Source: Oopsacas minuta
Lineage: Eukaryota > Animalia > Porifera
Direction of reading: 5' to 3'
Length of the DNA: 64,000 nt
NCBI GenBank assembly: GCA_024704765.1
Contig: JAKMXF010000311.1
Location: forward strand, 186,001-250,000
The position numbers and the translations under genes are program-made. How positions within the stretch are numbered: position 1 is the first letter of the stretch; each line of letters begins with the position of its first letter. The notes under the pieces were generated by a model, which saw only the letters and a list, made by a program, of their open reading frames with translations, had not been told where the DNA came from and ran no database searches. Positions 18,001-53,165 of this stretch are shown here, piece after piece.

Positions 18001-21000
18001 GATATGATACTAAAAGTATCTATGTAATAATCGACATACAGTTGCATACTCCACAACTTCCAATAGTTGAAGATATAGGAAAGAAGTACATAAATATTAA
18101 ATGGACTGACTACAGTTCCTTAGTATATACTAACTTTTATGAAATTTGCGTTCAAAAGTATGTAGAGAGTGATTGTATTCAAAATGTCACTACAACAGAT
18201 ACAGAGCATTCAATTGGTAATTTGGAACCAAACACACAGTACATCATAACGATAGTTGCAGTTACAGTGTTTGGGAGAAGTCCAGTGAGTCAGCCTCTAA
18301 TAGTGACAACTCAAGATCAAGGTATGCAAGTTTTTATTGTATACGTATATGTAATATTTTATGATTGTCTACACCACGAAGATTAAAACTAACACTCCCA
18401 AATTACAGCCAATGTCGAACTAATATTCATTCGAATTTTTGAAAGTGCCAATCACTTTTCTATTAATATAGCCACGTTACTCGAGTTTGCAGAAACAGAA
18501 GCTGCATATAATTGCCTTCATTCTGGTAAATAAGCAGCCTTCTACTGTATTATATTTTGCAGTAGTATGAAAAGTTAGGAATTTATTAGAATTATTTGTA
18601 CTGGAATCAATTTTCATAATTTTCTTCTCCAGAGATAGATAAACAAGAACCTGTGATAGATGAACCAAGGGAAAATATATCAATAATAATTACTAACATT
18701 AATGAATTGAGAAAATTTTCACTAAAGCAAGCATGTACTTCATCAGGAATACCTGAACCAATAATTGAGTGGACATCGAACACGGATTATATTTCTAACG
18801 ATGATCTGGATATCCAGCCAGGAGATTTGAGCATTGATGACAAAATAAATCCATATATTTTCACATGTACAGCCACAAATCAGATTGGAGAAGATTCCAG
18901 GCTTGTCTACATCAGAATTGAAGTTGATATCACAAAGGAAATTGAAGCGTTGGTCAATGTAACAGTAGAAGAAACAAAGAATTTGTCGATAATAATCGGG
19001 TTAAATGTAATTGGTATAAATGTTGATGATGAACAGAACATTACAAAGGCTCAAGATTCCATTGATAAGAACGCGGAAGATTTAGATAATTTGATTATCA
19101 AATTCACTGAGAGCAACACTGTGACTGAGGAAAACTCAGAAGTAGTAAAAGAACTTCTAGCTCCAGCAAGTGAAATTATTCAGAAAGATATAGAACTCTC
19201 TTTTGAAAGCGAACAAGAAGAAACAATGGTAATGAACTTATATTTTTCTAAATAAAAATATTTAATTTACCAGTTAAATTCAACGTTAATTTTGTAATAA
19301 TTACAGGTTGAGAAGGGCAGTGTTACTACAGCATCTAAAGGAATAACTACAGCACTGAATTCAGTTGAGCATTTAGCTTCGAACTTTGTTTCCAATCTTC
19401 CAACCGATGAAACAATGAGTGCAACAATTTCTTCTTCAGCAATCACATTGGTAGCGGAAAATATCATTTTACCTCCAAAAACAGAGAATGACTCCCTTAT
19501 AATTGATGACATAATTATTCCTGACGTCCTTACTTCTAAAAATGATGATATTAAAGAGCGAATTAAGATCCCAATTGAAGTAGCGCGTATGTTTTCTACG
19601 AATAATACAAAGCTTAGGGTAAGACAAATTAACATTTTTCGATCCTTGAAGCATTGATTGAGCTCAATCATAATTGTTTTAGATTGCTACAACAATCGTG
19701 AAAACAGACAGAAACTCTAAAGATGTCGATTCACAGAGTAAAGCACCAAGATTATCCAGTAATATATTGTCAGTTGTTATACCAGGATATGGAAGTAAAA
19801 TGAAAATGACAAAATTACCTCAACCAGTAAGCATACCAATTCCTTTAGTAATCTTATCAAAATTACATTTTTAAAATTCGGTTGTGGCTACAGTACCAAC
19901 AACGGCACCCAAAATTTTCGTCTTAGAGTGCTGTCAACGGCAAGGCCCAAATTCCCACTCATCAAAAAATGACATAGAACCACATACAATGAATCTTGGA
20001 ACCTGCTGCAGGCAATTTAAGAGTAAAAGTTTGTGTGCAGTTGCCGACTCTAGCCACTTCCAAAATTTATCACTTAATTCCACAGGTAAGATTGAGTATT
20101 CCAGTGCTTTCAACGAATGGCTTAGAACAATTTCAAAACTGCTCATTTCTCAACATTTCTTCATGGTTAACATTTGGATTAACTACATATGCTACTGAAG
20201 ACAATATCACATTTTGTGATACAGACCATTTTACAAGTTTCGCGGTTTTCGTCACTCCAAGGAAATTAGGTGATGATGATGATTTGAATAGAGTAGCCTC
20301 GATTGTAAGCTATGTACTAGTTTCCATCTCATTGGTGGCACTACTTATTTCATTAGTTCTGTTCTTACTGAGTGCAAGGAAGTTTTTCAAGTTGGAAGCT
20401 AACATAATTTATTTCAATTACTGTTTAGCAATGACCCTAGCGTTCGGTCTGTTTCTATTTGGAATAGAAACTGGAAAGTTCCATAAGATATTGTGTATGG
20501 TAATAGCCTTTCTACTTCATTATATTTGGCTTGCTGTATTCGTATGGACTCTGTGCAATGGACTGTTGATCCTCTACAAACTAACTATTGGTAAGTGAGC
20601 CAGATCTTTAATATATCAGCGTCAGGCTGCCTCAAATAGCTCAGCGTATTTCAAGGCATTATTATGGGGAAATCACAACTATTAAAATTCTGGGGGAAAA
20701 ACTACTATCTTTATATATATTCATTTTATTGTCTTATTTAGGAATTCTGAAAGAGCACAAGATTTACATATATCTTATACTTTTCGGATGGATATCTCCA
20801 ATCATTATACCCATTATTACTATCGCAATTAAACATGATAATTACGTAAAACCAGAAGAGCATTGTTTTCTGACATATGAAGATGGAATAATTTGGTCCT
20901 TCATTGGACCAATACTGGCAATACTGTCTATCAACATGATTATCCTCGTAATTGCGTGTATAAGAATAGCTAGAACAAAGTTTAGCACTGAAAAAATAGA

Positions 21001-21991
21001 TGAAAAAGATGCCTTGAGGAAGGGCATAGTGTCTTCATTAATACTAACTCCATTATTGGGTATTCCATGGTTGTTACTACTACTCAATATATTTATACCT
21101 GATCCGATTATCCAATGGTCATTTATTCTCGTAAACGGTCTTATGGGTGTGTTCTTCTTCATCGCTGTGACAATGCGAAATACAGAGGTGCGGAAATTGT
21201 GTACAAGGTTTTCGAAAGAAAAATCACGGATATCTACTTCTGCTATCACTGATGGGAAGACGAGTGGACTGTTGAGTAAAAAGTATAAGAGAAGTATTTC
21301 GAGGGAAACTGATGATGCTCTACCACAAACACCGGGAGGTGCAGGTAATAAAGGCGAATCCCTTCCCTTTGGTGAGTTTTGGATAAGTATATTACACGAT
21401 AATTGTAATAGGGGAAGTAACGTGAATCCAAGGAATATATTGAAAATCCCTTGGATTGGACAGTAAATCCTGAAAAAAAGGGGTATACAGGAATGCATAC
21501 ATACCGACATAAGTAATTTGTTGATAATAAGAATGCTAAATAATAATCTATTTACCATAGGACCTGTTCTCAAATATAAAGGTTCTGAAGATTCAAATAC
21601 ATTACAATCACCTACTGATGATTGCTCTCCCAGATATAATGAGGTCCCCAAACCGAAAATATTGGCCAAACCGAAAATATTGACCAAACCGAAAATATTG
21701 ACCAAACCGAAAACATTGCCGAAACCAAAAAGACTGCAGAAGTGTTCATCAGTATCAAACGAATCATTTGATGAAAGTGAATACCCAAAATGTGACATTC
21801 CAAAGAATTTAAAACCAGTTCCTATTTATGATATACTTAATCCTGCGACAGAACCAAAAGCTGATTCTCCCATTTATGAGGAACTCCGTGACGAAGATAT
21901 TATAGCAGACTTTGGTAATAAATCAGATTTCAAGTCAACTAAGGTGAACGAGAGAAAGCTCTACCAGAATTTGGCTTCTCTGGATGCATAA
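12017..21991 (+). CDS. Adhesion GPCR A: signal peptide, 6 SRCR-like domains, FN3-FN3-Ig-FN3-Ig, GAIN/GPS, 7TM, Tyr-motif tail. 16 exons, about 1,919 aa: 12017-12086, 14256-14546, 14694-14996, 15202-15558, 15616-15927, 15991-16332, 16458-16751, 16822-17145, 17202-17510, 17755-18321, 18633-19228, 19307-19618, 19683-19826, 20086-20590, 20742-21344, 21561-21991
   Basis: SRCR motifs ([11 protein letters not shown]...ACRNLGY), FN3 motifs (W...Y.V...L.P.T.Y.I...A.N..G.GP), Ig C..G.P.P...W...CTA.N..G, GPS CSFL..W...[11 protein letters not shown] and seven hydrophobic helices. All splice phases are compatible. Assignment of the 12017 signal-peptide exon is inferred. Confidence 0.88.
12379..13876 (-). 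CDS. ELAC1: Short-form tRNase Z (ELAC1-type), 3 exons: 13876-13498, 13250-12873, 12704-12379; 360 aa
   Basis: Motifs FLGTG, DCGEG, HMHGDH (HxHxDH metallo-beta-lactamase motif), GP-rich exosite arm (LGVPQGPLF), GDT, HEAT, GHST and HLSQRY. Both introns are phase-1 GT-AG and keep the frame. Confidence 0.95.
21646..21727 (+). repeat. 18-bp coding tandem repeat (about 4.5 copies) encoding KPKIL(A/T) in the GPCR A tail
   Basis: ccaaaccgaaaatattg(g/a) repeated; translation [28 protein letters not shown]. Confidence 0.9.
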
Positions 21992-22556: not shown

Positions 22557-25500
22557 CTAGACATCTGCTTCATACGGATTTTCAGTAGCATTGTCAGTTC
22601 CAATGTCCGTATTCTCTAAAGTTATTCCAGCACTTGGCTCTGCAGCTACTTCATACAGATTTTCAGGTGCACTGACAGTTCCATAGCCTGGATTCTCTAA
22701 AGTTAGGCCTGATTTAGGATCAGCTTCTGCACTTTCATTTTGGAAAACAACCCAAGAAGTATCGTAAACTGGATTAGTGGTGACATCTGTTGTCATCTTT
22801 GAATCACCAACATCTTGATATATCGGGGGTGGATGATCAGGGATCTCACTTACATCAGGTTCCCCCTTGTCAGTTGATCCAAACACAGTCCATTTTTTCT
22901 TTGATTTGGTTGTCTCATTGGAAGCTCCTTTCTGCATTATATCCGCATCTGAATAGAAATTTTCTTCTGTTTTACTCAAAGATTGCTCAAAGCCTAGAAA
23001 AATTAGGAATATTTTCAATTTCTAAGGAAATCTATTTCATACTTACGAACCTTCTGACAAAGTTGCCGAGATTTTCAGGATCAAATCATTAGATTTTAAG
23101 AATTTCCCGGATTTCACATTATTTCTACATTTTTCCCGAAAATATCCAAAAATACAGCAAGCAATGGTAGAAAATACTGGATTTTCAAAATATTTCCCGA
23201 GATACGAATAGAGATCCCAGGACAATCCAAAGATTCCGGAATAGTTGGTAAGTATGATATTCGTAAAATACACATATTTATCAACCAAAAAGAAATTTGT
23301 TGGAAGTATTTAGAATTACTCACCAATATTCGATGCTCCCTCAATGTCTAATTCCTTGGCTTTGGCTCTCTCCATTGTACTCGCATCTCCAGCTGGTTTT
23401 TTGAATTTGCTACTCACTTGAGTCCCACTTGTTGCTGAAGAAGAAGTAGCACCACCAGTAGATGGTTGTATAAGTCCTGCAATAATCTTTCTTCTCTTTA
23501 GAATTCCATGAACTTCCTTATTCCTTAACACTACCACAATCAAGAAAACCAACCCAATAAGACCGTTCAAAAAGATGAATATATACTGGAGTGCTATGTG
23601 TTGGATTGAAATGTTAAGGAGTAGGAAGAGCCAAGGAATTCCCAAAACAGGAGTTAATATTAAAGCTGTGATGAGTGCATCTTTCATTATAATTTTATGG
23701 TCATTATTTTGGTTTGACCATTTTGTATAGATGATCTTTGTAATGGCTATTACAAGGAAGACAACGTTGACAATCAATATAATTAGTATTGGAGCGATGA
23801 ATGCCCAAATGACTCCACCATCATTATTCAGGAAGCAATGTTCTGCCTCGTTTACATAGTAGGAACGTGTAATGATAATGGTTATGATTGGAATAACTAG
23901 TGGGAACACCCAACCAAACACGATGAGATATGGATAAATCTTCCTAGTAGACATCACGCCTAGAACAAGGATAGTTTAAGCAATTTTGTAGGGAAAACAT
24001 TTTGTATTGCAGCCGCGGCACATCCATTTGAAATGTGATCCGGCGACACCGTACAACTCTGAAAATGGTACGGAGCTCGCAGAATCAGCTGTATTGGATT
24101 GCCGCCCCTGCATCGTATTACATACTTATTATTTTATTATAAGTATGTACAGGACATAATTCAAATTCTTCCCTTTTGTCCCCCCCACCGCCACTGCAAT
24201 GACTAATTGAAATAGCATGGTTATTAGTACCCTCAAGTCAATATACGTACTTGATATTTAAGCTCAACTTACTTATAACAAGCTTGAACATTATCAATAT
24301 CCCTATACATAGAGTCCAAGTAAATACTGCTAACCATGTGTAGTGAAGTGCGAAGGCTATGATCATGCAAACAGTTCTATTGAATGTTCCTGTATCTATG
24401 CCAAATAAGAATATTCCTGTGGCTAACAGCATTGCAATACAGTAGTTGAAGTAAACTATGTTTGTTTCCACTTTGAAGAAAGCTTTTCCAGCAATGCAAA
24501 ATAGGATCAGTGATATTATCAGAGATATGAAGGAGATAGAAACTAGAATGTAGCTGAAAACATCGAGTACAACTGTTGCTGTTCCATCCGGCGTATCGTA
24601 TGGAGTAACGAAAACGGCGAAGCTCGTGAAATGGAATGTTTCGCAAATTATTACTCCAGTCGAGTCTGTAATTGTAGTGAGGCCATCAGATGCCCAGTTA
24701 TTCCCATCCAAATACACACAAGCATAATTGGAATTATTAGAAAATACGACAAATTTGATACCAACCTATATGATAATTTGGATAAATAATGGTAAATGAT
24801 AGGTGAAAATACACATGGATGAAATATCCTAAAAACTATGTATTATCTAGGCAATGTTTTGGTTACCACACAAATGTTGTTGTGGCAATTTTGTCTTTAT
24901 TGTCCTTATTTCACCATCTATTCAGCGTAATTCAGCGACACAATGTGTAAGGAAGGTAATAGGACAATAAAGATGACGTTTTCATTATAAAAAATGTATG
25001 AATCAAACTGAATGCCTTGCTGCCTCACGAAATATTTAGATAAAGATAATGAAATACCGTCCGCCCGCCCGCATGCTCAGGCGGATCTCATGTGGAGCTG
25101 AAACAAATTCCTCATTAATATTGGCCTTCAATATAACATAACAGAAACACAATTGTATTCTTTACCTTTGAAGATAAGGATACTTTTCCAGTCTTTCCTA
25201 CTATTGAAGTAGTTAGAATATCACTCGCTTGATAAGTCAATCCACTTACCCCAACATTGGGTTCGATAAAAGCCAAATCCAGATAGCTTATTGATGTACT
25301 GATCTAGAGAGGGAATTTAGTTATAGAATATTATTATACTGGTACGGTAGAATCTCCCAAAGTGGAGCATTCGGGGAAGTGTTTAAGATTCAATTCTGAC
25401 AAGGGGTTTATCCAGAAATTTTTTTTTCTTGCAGGGACTCTCCTTGGATGGCACTTTTTGGACGGTAAAATATTGATCAACTATAAATTAGATCTCGCAA

Positions 25501-47696: not shown

Positions 47697-50600
47697 TTAA
47701 GATAGTTGTTCCATGTTAATTACAAACTCCCCTGATATACTACTGCTATTATAGCTGCCTGTAATAGGTGGAGATCTTGCAATATTCCCACCTTCCTCTC
47801 CATCTTGGATGTTTGCATGAATTTCTTGAGTTTCTTCAGGAATTTTAGTAATAGAATTAGAAGGTGATGGTGAAGTTTGGCTTATGTTATCTATAAGACG
47901 AAATAATACTACAAAGTTAACACGTTTTACTGATATGGAAATTTGAAAAGAGGTAATACTAAATGATTTATCTATACTAAATATCAGCTATTCCTCACCG
48001 CAGTATCATGGGAGTACCGGAGAACGATTATTTGGGGTCATCAAATTATTTAGAGGATGCACAGATTGTTATTTGAAATATTCAGATGGAGTTATACAAT
48101 TTGGAGCCTACTGATAATATTGGATATTTTACATGACCTGAAAATAATCACGAATTCTCATGACACACTTTCAATTCATACCATCATTGCAAATTCTCAT
48201 TTTGTTTTCGATCCATTCATTAATTAGCAAAATATTCAAACTCTACCTTCACTCTGAATGTTGGTCCTAGCTCGAGGGCGATATTTAAGAGGAGTTTGGG
48301 AATTTGAAGCAATCAAACTCCGCTTCGTAAGTCTCTGTTTCCTCTTTGTTCGGGCTTTACACAACAATTCCTGGATTTCATCATTCAAAAGCACAACCAC
48401 AAAGAAGAATATTATCCCTAACGAACCAGTGAGAACGACAATTAAGTAATCAATCACAATATGTCGAATAAACATTCCAATAATTGTCACTCCCCATGGT
48501 AATCCCAGAATCGGAGTTAATGTAAATGCTGTAATAACGGTCTTCTTCCCAATCTCAGAGGATTTATAGTTGTTTGTCTTTTTGAATGCGTAGAATATTC
48601 TGCATAGCGTTATACAGAGTATTATGAAGTTGATGAATATTATGACGTACACAGGGGCAACAAACGCATATACTAGGCTGTAATTTATGAAGCAAATCTC
48701 TCTGCGTTCGTAAATATAGTTATCGAAACCTACAATGAGGGTTATGACAGGGATCATTATAGGTGTGATCCATCCAATCACGAAAAGTATTGGATATATT
48801 TTTCTTTTTTGCATTGTGCCTAAAATAAGAAACATACGTTGAAAAGTAACAACTAAAGTATTCAAATATTTTGAGAATTCGTCGAAGCATTTTTTGATGT
48901 ATTTATGTGATTTGTGAAATAATAAGGTTTGGCAAAATCATTAGATTTTTTAAAATAGGAAAATATCAAAAATGTCCGAATAATATCGAAGGCATAGGGA
49001 AAATGCCGAAAAATATTGAATTATCCGAAAATATTTCTCAGTTATTTTCTGATATTTTCGATATTCTCTGGATATTTTGATATTTTCGAGTTTTCTTAAT
49101 TTCCAATATAACTTGGAGTAATCTATATATTGAACGTAAATTACCTATGGTGATTGAATATAAGATCAGTAGTCCAATGCAAAACATCCAGGAAAAAAGT
49201 GCCAACCACGTATAGTGTATTAGAAAAACGACAGCCTTGCACAAATCAACATTAAACCTGAATATCGAAGAAGATAAAAATAATGCTACATTTAAGAACA
49301 TTGCAAGACAGCAGTTGAAGTAGACAATATTCGCTTCGATCTTGAAGAATCTTTTCCCAGCTGCGATAAATAGTATTAGAGAAAGCAAAAGGCAAATCAA
49401 AGACAAGCTACCCAGAATATAACTTAAATAATCGCATGCAAGGTAATTTAGTGCGTCATACGTGTATGTGTATGGTGATACAAGGACAGCGAAACTTGTC
49501 AAGTGTTTTGCGTAACAATCAACTGAAGATTCATTGAATATATTCCCTATAGTGACATCTTTCGTTGACCATTCAAGAGTAGTAGTATTGAGAAACACAC
49601 AGGCAAATTCGTATAATGTATCATTTAGAGGGTTTGTATTGAAGCTGATCTTAATCTATAGATGTAATAGGAATGATAAATGAGAGAAATACTCATTATG
49701 ACGTAATTTGTTTGAATAATAAGTATATTCAGCACGAAATAGTCTCACTTTTTGTTGTAAAATTTATCATAGATTTTACTTGCTTTGATTAAAATTTCAA
49801 TTTTCTATAAAACTTAATTTGCTCGTATGTAATACTGTGTAATCTCTATAAATGGGACGCAAAAAAATGCTATCAGTTTCTCCTTTCTGTCAAATTCCTC
49901 GTTTATGGCGGTTCATTTGTAGAGACTAGGAAAAAGCTCAAATATATTTCACTCCGTTTTCAAAAATTCCCCGTTTCCATAGGCTCTGTTTGTGGAGGTT
50001 TCAATGTAATCATAATTTGATCTATTTAACATACCGGTGTGGAAAAGAGAGATTGGCTGGAGTTAACATAATATGATGGTAGAACTATCTGCATAACTTG
50101 GCTAGCAATCTGTGAGTCTACTCTATTAGCAGCCTCAAACTTGGCATAATCGTGTGTATTAACAATCGTAGCTGCTATACTAAACCTATCATTATTAACA
50201 TCTCCAATTTGATCAATTAGCTCAATTGGTATTTCAACTTCCTCCAACATCTGAGAATTAGAATCAAGGATTTGTAACCTAGGTGCTGAACTCAATTCTG
50301 ATTTTATCCAACTCTTCGAATGCATAGAAATAGATTCATATGATAAATCGACTGTACTGCTGTCATATAAGCCAATATTATTAGCGATGTTAATTGCAAT
50401 AAATTCCAATGAATCGTATGCCATAATTGAAGCTTCAGCTACATTCAGGGGTTGTTGATTTGCAATCTAAAAAAATCAGAATACTACTCATAAACATTCA
50501 TAACTTTATTTCTAACCTATTAAAATGTTTGCTATACCTGAGCAATTGAAGCAGTTTGGTTCATCGTAGTAGTTCTAGGCAGGCTACTGACTTTCAAGAT

Positions 50601-53165
50601 GCTATTTGCAGTATTCAAAAGCCTCATTGTTATATCTCTCTGCTGCAAAACATTATACTGCTTAGTAAACCGATTCACAAGCGTATGATAGGTAGAAGAG
50701 AGATCATGGAATTCTTCGTATACCTCATCAGAAAAATGATATCCAGCATCAAAACCAGACTCCCCAATTGCAGCGAGTCTATTAGAATGTTCGTGTTCTA
50801 TTTCAGTGTAAATTTCGTCAGTAACCGAGAGAAGATATTCATTCAACTCATCAAGTACGTATTCATCCAAATCATCTTCATCCGAAATACCCTCACGGAA
50901 ATCGTTTAGAATCTCAATTCTTGTTCTATTCCCCCCTACCACTTCTACGTATATAGTTACGTAGACAAATCCTATAGCGTTGTGGGCATAGCAATAGTAA
51001 GGAGTGGTTTTAGTTATCTTATTTAGTGCTTGTAATCCAAGGAATAGAATGCTCTCATTTGAAACAGGCTGAAAATTAGAATCTAGCCAATAATATTCAA
51101 CATCTTCACTCTCTGCATTGCAATTAATAATTCTGTAAGATGATACAGAAATATTTGCAATAATTATCGACATATCGATTGGATTGGTGATAGAAGGAAT
51201 ATTATCTAGAGAATTGATATCCTTCATTACTTAGAGTATGATATACGATACTACTGAAAGTCTAAGGAGTGTACAACATTTTATAGTATTAAGGGGCTAT
51301 TGAAACGCTTCAAGGGGAGGGGTGGTATACGAAGTGTAGCACCCAATTTTTTGTATACAAAACAGCGAAAAGGCGTGACACAGGGAGGGCAGGGGTTAAG
51401 ATTCAGAGAATTATCGTTTGAACGGCACGTATATATCATTCTAACTTAATCTCAAAAGAGTCATATTATACGTGTTATGTTCAAGTTAAACAACATACAT
51501 GTTTCGAACATTTCAAAAACAACAAATGAATATACAGGTACCCGGCTTCGGCTACACATATACATAACATTCTCAGGTACGCGAAAGGCCTATGCAGCAT
51601 GTATTTCGTATTTTACACGAATTTTCCTTGCAAATACGCGAACTTGGTTAGAGGAATTCTTTCCAATATAAAATGGACTCTATGGGACTCGTAAAATGGA
51701 CTCATCGTTAATTAGCAATTCACTTTTGCAAAATGGCGAATTGCTAATAGACAAACACCACTGTAGTTCACATTTTAAAAGTCAATCAAAACAAATGAAC
51801 ATTGGAAGTTTGCTGTACACGAATAACATCTACACACTATACTAATAGATTTGGCATAATCACGTGGCCATTATGATATTTATGGGAAATATTTACATAC
51901 TTACCATTGTTGTCCTCAGGTTCAGTGCATATATTAGTGTCGCATTCTATGTTACAGTAGTAACCGACAAAACCAGGGGAACATATCAACTGGTAATATA
52001 TAGTAGTATTGATTGATTGTTGTATAGTCGTGCCCTGAATTACTCCAGATTTTGTATTCTCAGATGATTGTATATTACTACGAAAGTATCCACTAGCATA
52101 GAGTTGTTTTCCAGATGAAGTATTGTAGGTTTCAATCTTGGAAAATAATTCAAATTTTCCCTAAACAAATACCTAAGTTAAAAAGGCAGCATATAGTTAT
52201 ATTTATTGAAATTGGACATCTACGTATTCGATGATAAATTGAATAAGAATGAAATAAAATTTACAATCTGTGCCGACAGCAAAGTATATTAATCGAATTT
52301 TACTAAAATGCATCTATAAATTTGACGCACTGTGTGTTGAGGTGAAATTCAATTAATATACTATGCTGTCGGCACAGATTACAATTTTACATTTTTGTCC
52401 TCTATGAATGTCATAACAAACAAACAATTTCAACAATCTAACCTCAATTATTGATCATTAAATTCACATCCCTATTACATACTTACATCAAAATCATTGT
52501 CTGTTTCAACTTCATCGGATCCCCCATCAGTAGTGTCCAATAACAAGCCATACGTGTCATCATCATTCTTGTACGCATAAGCACTCACACTCAATTCAAT
52601 ATTCGGTGAAACACAATTAAATGATTCTAGTGAATTTCCGAATCTTATACAAAATGTAGCTTGAATTCGGCAGTAAAATGCATTGCTGTTGCAGTAAGAA
52701 TCAAGATCATTGCTTTCTAGCACTAACGAGTTGAAATCGAATCTCAACACTCCACCACCGATAACTTGATCCTACAAACATGATCACATTGAGAATGGTT
52801 ATATTTGTTATTAAGAATTAAAGGATATTAACTTAAAATTCACTGGCAAACTACAGTCAACCCCCATTATATCTAACACTTATATATCCAAATACCCGCT
52901 TATATCTGAGTAGTTATCGCCGTTCCTTGAGCTTCGAAATTGCAGAAGTTAACGCCTTGAAGGTATTAGATAGAATTTAATGCATAATTTAGAAATCAAC
53001 AAAGTTTCGGAAGCTCAAACATAACGTAACTCAATCCCCCTCCTATTTTCGCACTATAATCATTGGTATCTACTTGAAGTGGTAATTACTTAACATTTGA
53101 GCAACGTCTTGCCTCACCATAGATCCTAAGAAAAACAAACAAATATACCAGAAGAGAACATTCAT
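47697..53165 (-). CDS. Adhesion GPCR C: signal peptide, Notch-ligand-like C2/MNNL domain plus partial DSL, Ig, GAIN/GPS, 7TM. 8 exons, about 988 aa: 53165-53118, 52771-52487, 52160-51905, 51205-50538, 50466-50035, 49655-49145, 48819-48247, 47890-47697
   Basis: Signal exon MNVLFWYICLFFLGSM with a gtgagg donor, Ig (C...YYW...YYCYAHNAIG), GPS CVFL...EW...C..KHLTSFAVLV and a 7TM paralogous to A and B. All phases are consistent. The MNNL/DSL assignment rests on a manual motif and Cys-spacing comparison. Confidence 0.82.

Follow-up and report, generated by a model that had tools for sequence, protein, structure and literature searches.

Mechanical pull between cells is known to activate two main receptor systems, the adhesion GPCRs and Notch. 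The Delta/Jagged-type ligands of Notch (JAG1, DLL1, DLL4) bear a tip made of a C2 (MNNL) and a DSL domain. Their C2 domains contain six cysteines, the Ca2+ ligands of JAG1 lie after the strand corresponding to GKFELFSKIETYN of the gene described here, and the C3-C4 loop of the JAG1 DSL domain carries Notch-contacting residues (RPRDDFFGH). JAG1 has phase-0 introns at c.81/82 and c.387/388, with c.81+1, c.387+1 and c.388-1 among the listed positions (PMC6899717). In the sponge Amphimedon, the ectodomains of adhesion GPCRs have been catalogued as containing EGF, fn3, HRM, Ig types, SNARE, SRCR and DUF domains (PMC4302439). A functional link between adhesion GPCRs and Notch ligands is known from C. 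elegans, where latrophilin, an adhesion GPCR, is reported to bind a DSL ligand, the two being separate proteins; the sponge gene presented here differs in that a possibly ligand-derived head lies within the receptor chain itself (PMC12255766).

This gene lies in a window of 64,000 nucleotides from Oopsacas minuta (contig JAKMXF010000311.1, positions 186,001 to 250,000), which is the whole stretch of DNA that was analysed. It is genuine and expressed, and encodes a 988-aa adhesion GPCR with a signal peptide, a head of ~180 aa, an Ig-like domain, a GAIN/GPS stalk, a 7TM region and a tail, in that order (Table 1). It lies on the minus strand, with GT..AG boundaries at all introns and open reading frames throughout. 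The transcript evidence comes from X4, a public run that behaves as an RNA run in yielding spliced contigs, while X1-X3 are unspliced DNA. In X4, exons 1-4 and the three joints between them lie on a single 1131-nt contig (depth 264), which overlaps a further X4 contig comprising exons 4-6. The last junction was recovered from a loose X4 end matching 47861-47890, with a GT donor and an AG acceptor; because it adds an eighth coding exon, the protein has 988 rather than 927 aa. The protein collections contained neither a spliced nor an annotated product of the gene. The first-pass annotation had placed three 5' exons on the minus strand and joined them to an Ig-like/GAIN exon. The exons lie where it put them, its peptide strings agree with the translation, and the RNA confirms the junction at exactly 51905>51205, so that the head exons and the Ig-like/GAIN/7TM exons belong to a single transcript.

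Table 1. Coding exons of the adhesion GPCR gene (positions are those of the window)
Feature	Position	Strand	Content	Junctions and support
Coding exon 1	53118..53165	-	Signal peptide with the start codon (aa 1-16, 16 codons); ends in phase 0	53118>52771 (X4 contig of 1131 nt)
Coding exon 2	52487..52771	-	First half of head, aa 17-111, 95 codons, phase 0 at both ends; predicted β-strands	52487>52160 (X4 contig of 1131 nt)
Coding exon 3	51905..52160	-	Second half of head with EGF/DSL-type hairpin, aa 112-197, 256 nt, ends in phase 1	51905>51205 (X4 contig of 1131 nt)
Coding exon 4	50538..51205	-	aa 197-419; Ig-like motif, then acidic helical start of stalk/GAIN region	51905>51205, 50538>50466 (X4)
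Coding exon 5	50035..50466	-	Stalk/GAIN region, aa 420-563	50035>49655 (X4); orthologous matches
Coding exon 6	49145..49655	-	aa 564-734; GPS motif (putative HL/T at 49505-49497), tethered-agonist-like TSFAVLV, TM1-3	49145>48819 (X4)
Coding exon 7	48247..48819	-	TM4-7, aa 734-925; Pfam 7tm_2	49145>48819 (X4), 48247>47890
Coding exon 8	47697..47890	-	Cytoplasmic tail and stop, aa 925-988; overlooked by ORF-only reading	48247>47890 (X4 loose end)

The body of the protein is readily classified. The Pfam 7tm_2 model matches exon 6 (E 4.7e-7, 29.7 bits) and exon 7 (E 2.1e-14, 53.8 bits), both over the cutoff of 20.6 bits, and ~7 hydrophobic segments lie within aa 643-878. The GPS model scores 21.2 bits on exon 6 (E 4e-4) against a cutoff of 22.5; the motif HLTSFAVLV occupies aa 614-622, ~20 residues ahead of TM1, with the putative cleavage site HL/T at aa 614-616. 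Judged by its sequence, the protein thus has the secretin-type 7TM core and the GPS motif with a predicted HL/T site that define adhesion GPCRs (class B2). The Ig-like motif C...W...YYCYAxNxxG was recognized by eye in exon 4, an exon conserved at 51-57% in P0004-P0008, and its form C...W...YxCxAxNxxG is invariant. No Pfam or PDB profile matched a GAIN or Ig domain on exons 4-5: Pfam offered no Ig family at E<=10, and the search of PDB profiles returned nothing at E<=1. The proposed Ig-GAIN arrangement therefore stands at the level of motifs, while the Ig domain and the helical part of GAIN went undetected by the Pfam and PDB profiles. Given that the Ig-like motif of exon 4 is itself unseen by these profiles, their silence is weak evidence in this lineage.

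In its GPS with HL/T, its 7tm_2 core and an Ig-like domain before the stalk, the gene resembles Ig-type adhesion GPCRs, including those of Amphimedon, and, like them, it would carry at its N-terminus an adhesive module acquired through domain shuffling; it departs from the Amphimedon catalogue in that its head matches no Pfam family (PMC4302439). The first-pass annotation had asked for sponge surveys to be checked for a prior mention of the architecture, and that catalogue contains neither MNNL nor DSL ('dsl' occurs 0 times; PMC4302439). Our literature search likewise returned no paper with both 'MNNL' and 'adhesion GPCR', or with both 'DSL domain' and 'GAIN domain'. The idea that the two other adhesion GPCR genes of the window bear paralogous heads was considered and rejected.

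The head spans aa 17-196 and contains 8 invariant cysteines. Four of these (43, 50, 57 and 69) are encoded by exon 2 with the spacing C-x6-C-x6-C-x11-C, and the others form the exon 3 hairpin, C171-x8-C180-x3-C184-x4-C189. The predicted disulfides are C171-C180, C184-C189 and two formed among C43, C50, C57 and C69. Both head exons recur, with identical exon phases (0, 0, 1), at six loci that are syntenic in related sponges, and five of the six also retain the collinear Ig-like/GAIN/7TM body; the C-terminal tail (exon 8) is conserved in L001, L004 and L005. With a dN/dS of ~0.3 (0.25-0.37 in unsaturated pairs), the head is a conserved module under selection. In L005 the intron between exons 2 and 3 is in frame, yet contains three stops. 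A phmmer search of 1.84 billion representatives recovered as relatives of exon 2 just three short fragments from the same sponge clade. AF2 models of exons 2 and 3, each predicted alone as a half-domain, are all-β with pLDDT of only 45 and 50, and Foldseek comparison of these low-pLDDT models with the PDB gave only noise (E>1).

What, then, is the origin of this head? The first-pass annotation regarded it as a Delta/Jagged C2 (MNNL) domain followed by half a DSL, and several of its general features are indeed those of the heads of JAG1, DLL1 and DLL4: it is N-terminal, right after the signal peptide, and appears to be an all-β region of ~150 aa, with a C-x8-C-x3-C hairpin coming straight after it and no CxC before that hairpin. 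It differs from them in sitting on an Ig-like/GAIN/7TM body rather than on EGF repeats and a single TM, in having 4 rather than 6 cysteines in the C2-equivalent part, and in possessing no more than roughly one third of the DSL, with no RPRDDxFGH loop, C5-C6 pair or EGF repeats. In the sponge gene, phase-0 introns interrupt the coding sequence at aa 16/17, 6 residues ahead of the first strand, and at aa 111/112, directly before GKFELFSKIETYN. They are kept in all six loci and coincide with introns 1 and 2 of JAG1 (PMC6899717), as the first-pass annotation had suggested; at the Jagged-like locus L013 the acceptor stands immediately before RSYTLLVEAWD. The equivalence of the second intron is drawn from an alignment made by eye. 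Exon 2 has 95-97 codons in the sponges versus 102 in JAG1, the second intron is separated from the first hairpin cysteine by 59 residues in the sponge gene versus 57 in JAG1, and exon 3 ends in phase 1 like the Jagged DSL exon. The gene structure hence matches that of a Notch-ligand C2, as a supportive rather than defining character.

In seven orthologues, neither exon 2 nor exon 3 was matched at E<=10 by the Pfam MNNL model (PF07657), now a 157-position model of the whole C2, or by the DSL model (PF01414). Genuine Jagged fragments of equal or lesser length are recognized: those retaining 35-39 residues of C2 still score 24.5-25.6 bits, and one with DSL positions 1-25 alone reaches 35.9 bits. 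PDB profile searches with exon 2 and the pre-hairpin part of exon 3 found no ligand C2, and neither did phmmer of exon 2 find a ligand among the 1.84 billion representatives. The Jagged sequences that were fetched for direct comparison, three fragments recovered with a 51-aa bait from the human JAG1 DSL and five Jagged-like loci from a metagenome scan with those fragments, span only the C-terminal third of C2 and the DSL; locus L014 is exactly identical to the bait. Against these, hhalign of exon 3 gave a probability of 8-9%, Smith-Waterman z-scores for Jagged C2C+DSL were 2.3-4.4 across all seven orthologues, and Jagged C2 scored no higher than shuffled controls with an HMM of the pre-hairpin region. 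Across the hhalign, Smith-Waterman and HMM-versus-shuffle comparisons, the signal is weak and does not extend beyond the hairpin. A language-model search of the ESM Atlas with exon 3 ranked Notch-ligand DSL/MNNL clusters at the top of the named clusters (0.90, 0.88, 0.88, 0.80 and 0.76), with generic EGF clusters at <=0.75 though far more numerous; the match involves 167 shared features, slightly below the tool's guide value of 170. The equivalent search with exon 2, from the window and from L002, gave noise only. No significant match to MNNL or DSL thus emerged from Pfam, PDB profiles or hhalign, and the Delta/Jagged reading of the head is only partly supported, with the exon 3 ranking and the introns in its favor and the profile tests and the pre-hairpin region against it.

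The hairpin itself is ambiguous between two families. It adjoins the last strand without a preceding CxC, which is DSL-like and unlike EGF. It nevertheless has four cysteines (C-x8-C-x3-C-x4-C) rather than the six of a DSL, lacking the third DSL disulfide, and its C3-C4 loop has 4 residues versus 11 in the fetched Jagged sequences. Of the six-cysteine EGF pattern it shows only the C5-C6-type hairpin, C-x2-G-F/Y-x-G-x2-C, with Leu at the C4 position and the N-terminal half of EGF absent from the head. Its fit to EGF C5-C6 is at least equal to its fit to DSL C1-C2: the best PDB profile matches are Notch EGF repeats (E 0.01, over ~25 residues), with the start of the DLL4 DSL only at E 4, and Pfam reports EGF_DL_JAG and EGF_Teneurin at E around 0.1. 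Of the proposed half DSL with a phase-1 joint to the Ig exon, the phase holds, and the hairpin is indistinguishable from a generic EGF hairpin.

These observations bear unequally on the possible histories of the head. One of them, that the head exons form a separate upstream gene whose joint to the GPCR is an artefact, has practically no chance of being right: we found nothing in its favor, and it is already refuted by the single X4 contig that joins exons 1-3 to exon 4 and overlaps the contig of exons 4-6. The exon order and phases are, moreover, the same in five other species. A far more serious contender, which we rate as quite possible if somewhat below an even chance, is that the head combines a lineage-specific β-rich domain with the leftover half of an ordinary EGF repeat, without any Notch-ligand ancestry. 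Phase 0 is the most frequent class of intron. On this view, the cysteine spacing, strand pattern and intron phases are what might be expected of any small disulfide-bonded extracellular β-domain beside an EGF-type hairpin. The uniformly negative profile tests, the restriction of exon 2 relatives to three same-clade fragments, the EGF families that head the known matches of the hairpin, and the by-eye basis of the second-intron equivalence all agree with such an origin. It is less easily reconciled with the ranking of DSL/MNNL above the far more numerous EGF clusters, with the joint agreement of two introns, exon 2 size and the distance to the first hairpin cysteine with JAG1, or with a hairpin that has neither the EGF CxC nor the N-terminal EGF half. 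The head may, on the other hand, be a very diverged copy of the Delta/Jagged tip; we give an even chance to its descent from the C2 (MNNL) and DSL domains at the tip of a Delta/Jagged-type Notch ligand, which is the origin that we favor for the head of this 988-aa adhesion GPCR. This descent is inferred, as are the fold adopted by the head and whatever partner it may bind.

The first-pass proposal, that the head works as a ligand tip, binding either Notch or Ca2+/lipid, so that the receptor senses Notch or membranes directly by the canonical ligand interfaces, appears very improbable. What speaks for it is indirect and hinges on Notch-ligand homology, together with the reported binding of a DSL ligand by latrophilin in C. 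elegans (PMC12255766). Against it, the loop that contacts Notch in JAG1 is cut to those four residues and the third DSL disulfide is missing. The acidic KNDDD...DGGSDEVETDNDFD stretch, which the first-pass annotation had put forward in connection with Ca2+, is variable, with KENNE, KVGES and GQYVLLETENDFD in the orthologues and a 3-residue deletion in the window species; the stretch thus reflects a species-specific deletion and substitution, and the idea of a conserved Ca2+ site there was rejected. Nor is there a conserved pair of acidic residues after the GKFELFSKIETYN strand, the position of the Ca2+ ligands in JAG1.

If the head is of Notch-ligand descent, the following scenario might be envisaged. 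A Notch-ligand tip would have been moved by exon shuffling onto a GAIN-7TM gene via its phase-1 3' boundary, and would then have diverged past profile detection, losing the greater part of the DSL and with it the Notch-contacting loop. The resulting head would be an all-β module with four disulfides, capped by an EGF/DSL-type hairpin. As for any adhesion GPCR, it would anchor to a partner on a neighbouring surface, whether membrane or protein; pulling would part the fragments at HL/T, and the freed TSFAVLV stalk would switch on the 7TM.

Should the head prove to be a new lineage-specific domain, the gene would represent one more sponge adhesion GPCR with an orphan ectodomain, of value for annotation but no surprise. 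That an adhesion GPCR with all seven helices acquired the tip of a Delta/Jagged-type Notch ligand, which selection has since maintained across a sponge clade, is a proposition that we place just short of an even chance. If it is true, the sensor tip of this adhesion GPCR was once the head that bears force in Notch signalling, the other pull-activated system; the two systems would share parts, and perhaps partners, in sponges, and early animals would have shuffled working tips between them.

The receptor gene lies on the minus strand, where canonical splice sites delimit its three short 5' coding exons (53165-51905). All introns are of the GT..AG type, the reading frame is open throughout, and our translation agrees with the peptides quoted in the first-pass annotation. 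The stretch is present in four public sequencing runs from one sample, of which X1-X3 are unspliced (DNA) and X4 yields spliced contigs. One X4 contig of 1131 nt (depth 264) runs from exon 4 back to exon 1 via joints 51205/51905, 52160/52487 and 52771/53118; it is overlapped by a 997-nt contig with joints 50466/50538 and 49655/50035, and a third contains joint 48819/49145. Hence the junction from 51905 to 51205 is real, and the exons encoding the N-terminal head (residues 17-196) are joined to the receptor in a single transcript chain, as had been proposed. The protein comprises 988 residues once the eighth exon is included, and both gene and architecture are firmly established. The ORF-based gene end (stop 48236) falls within intron 48246-47891; in the spliced form exon 8 adds a 63-residue Ser/Pro-rich tail, and an unspliced contig at low depth is also present for 47697-48246.

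Exons 1-3 and 8 of the receptor gene
Feature	Coordinates	Strand	Remarks
Exon 1	53165-53118	-	ATG and 16 codons of signal peptide, then GT donor
Exon 2	52771-52487	-	95 codons; AG acceptor, GT donor
Exon 3	52160-51905	-	256 nt, phase 1 at end
Exon 8	47890-47697	-	X4 contig loose end at 48247 matches 47861-47890

The body of the receptor gives Pfam matches to 7tm_2 (29.7 and 53.8 bits) and to GPS (21.2 bits, slightly below the 22.5 cutoff); an HL|T cleavage motif at residues 614-616 precedes TSFAVLV and roughly seven hydrophobic segments. The Ig-like domain of exon 4 displays the classic C...W...YxCxAxNxxG pattern, invariant across six sequences, and was seen by neither Pfam nor PDB profile search; thus one obvious domain is missed by profiles in this AT-rich lineage (35% GC), which calibrates the searches with the head. 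The window contains two further adhesion-GPCR 7TM regions, arranged head to head (~19350-21290, plus strand; 23400-24650, minus strand) and 32-51% identical to exons 6-7, near which nothing resembling exons 2-3 was detected.

A phmmer search with exon 2, covering 1.84 billion representatives, recovered three short fragments only. The contigs bearing these fragments and the relatives of exon 4 proved to be syntenic loci in other assemblies, sharing the order PTR2, DUF3719, receptor gene, SRCR arrays. Both head exons occur in six distinct loci (L001-L005 and L009; 44-58% identity), five of which have the whole collinear head/Ig-like/GAIN/7TM gene. The sixth, L002 (9953-15202), has the head and exon 4, but no GAIN/7TM exons lie downstream in that orientation, and the next 7TM is an inverted paralogue (38-39% identical); either the copy is truncated, the locus is rearranged or the assembly differs. 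The flanks of the six loci comprise a PTR2 transporter, DUF3719 and an unnamed ORF of ~190 residues before the receptor and SRCR-domain arrays, with amine oxidase and ALO preceding the receptor in some. The intron between exons 2 and 3 in L005 (4155-4256) is 102 nt long and in frame yet interrupted by three stop codons, as it is in L006-L008.

The head had been read as a Delta/Jagged C2 (MNNL) domain with half a DSL domain, shuffled onto the receptor. Pfam was silent on this: the MNNL model (now 157 positions, covering the whole C2-like domain) and the DSL model (46 positions) gave no match at E<=10 to exon 2 or exon 3 in seven orthologues. Genuine Jagged fragments, run as controls, scored 24.5-25.6 bits with 35-39 C2 residues, and 35.9 bits with half a DSL. 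These comparators were fragments obtained with a 51-residue JAG1 DSL bait, followed by five Jagged-like metagenome loci (L010-L014). The latter are vertebrate Jagged exon sequences within metagenome contigs, that is, host or handler DNA, and L014 is identical to human JAG1 exon 4. No ligand was retrieved when exon 2 or the pre-hairpin part of exon 3 served as query in PDB profile searches. Full exon 3 matched Notch EGF repeats at E 0.01 through Y-x-L-I-C-x2-G-F-x-G-x-Y-C-x2-E-C, and the DLL4 DSL start at E 4 only. Against Jagged sequences hhalign returned 8-9% probability (P about 0.004), its Viterbi path pairing the hairpin with DSL C5-C6 whereas Smith-Waterman paired it with C1-C2. The pre-hairpin HMM scored Jagged C2 no higher than shuffled sequences. 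For each of the seven orthologues, which are not mutually independent, the Smith-Waterman z-score lies within 2.3-4.4, a weak signal in favour of the ligand reading. The C3-C4 loop has 4 residues in the head versus 11 in the fetched Jagged sequences. Given the EGF matches, the hhalign result, the conflicting pairings and the HMM at shuffle level, the putative half DSL is indistinguishable from a generic EGF-type hairpin.

Gene structure offers evidence in favour. The JAG1 splice variants c.81+1, c.387+1, c.388-1 and c.439+1 show introns 1 (codons 27/28) and 2 (codons 129/130) to be in phase 0, and the C2-like domain includes G33, N105, R113, L134 and Q147 (PMC6899717). In the Jagged-like locus L013 the acceptor immediately precedes RSYTLLVEAWD. 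The two sponge phase-0 introns, at 16/17, six residues ahead of the initial strand GVLRFDF, and at 111/112, immediately before GKFELFSKIETYN, do match these positions (the second by an alignment made by eye), as the first-pass annotation had suggested. Exon 2 has 95-97 codons in sponges and 102 in JAG1, the second intron lies 59 and 57 residues, respectively, from the first hairpin Cys, and the hairpin exon ends in phase 1 in both. Moreover, the hairpin directly follows the last β-strand, without CxC and without the N-terminal EGF half, as in Notch ligands. Half-domain AF2 models are all-β at low confidence, with strands where those of JAG1 would fall in an alignment.

In an ESM Atlas feature search with exon 3, considering named clusters only, Notch-ligand clusters ranked first: DSL 100% (0.90), Delta-like with DSL and MNNL (0.88), and 'Delta serrate ligand / N terminus of Notch ligand C2-like' (0.88). 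These were followed by Jagged-2-like and Delta-like clusters, and generic EGF clusters reached at most 0.75. The top clusters are fragments of 127-149 residues covering the C-terminal C2 part and DSL start, as exon 3 would. As the 167 shared features fall slightly below the tool's guide value of 170, this is a lead rather than proof; exon 2 gave only noise. Descent from the C2-DSL tip of a Notch ligand is the best single explanation of the head, with roughly even chances of being right. An unrelated, lineage-specific β-domain with a leftover EGF hairpin, consistent with the profile results, is nearly as likely.

The acidic stretch, earlier proposed as a Ca2+/lipid site, is not conserved: orthologues carry uncharged strand-like sequence, and three residues are deleted in the window species. 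With the greater part of the DSL absent, no canonical Notch-binding DSL face is possible. In the literature searched, no paper that contains 'MNNL' also mentions 'adhesion GPCR', none with 'DSL domain' mentions 'GAIN domain', and no MNNL/DSL-type domain is among those listed in the Amphimedon GPCR survey (PMC4302439). In C. elegans, latrophilin is reported (2025) to bind a DSL ligand, the two being separate proteins (PMC12255766).

Whatever its origin, the head retains eight invariant cysteines (43, 50, 57, 69, 171, 180, 184 and 189), identical exon phases (0, 0, 1) in all six loci and a dN/dS of 0.25-0.37 in pairs with unsaturated dS. The head is thus a selected, functional module and a conserved orphan.
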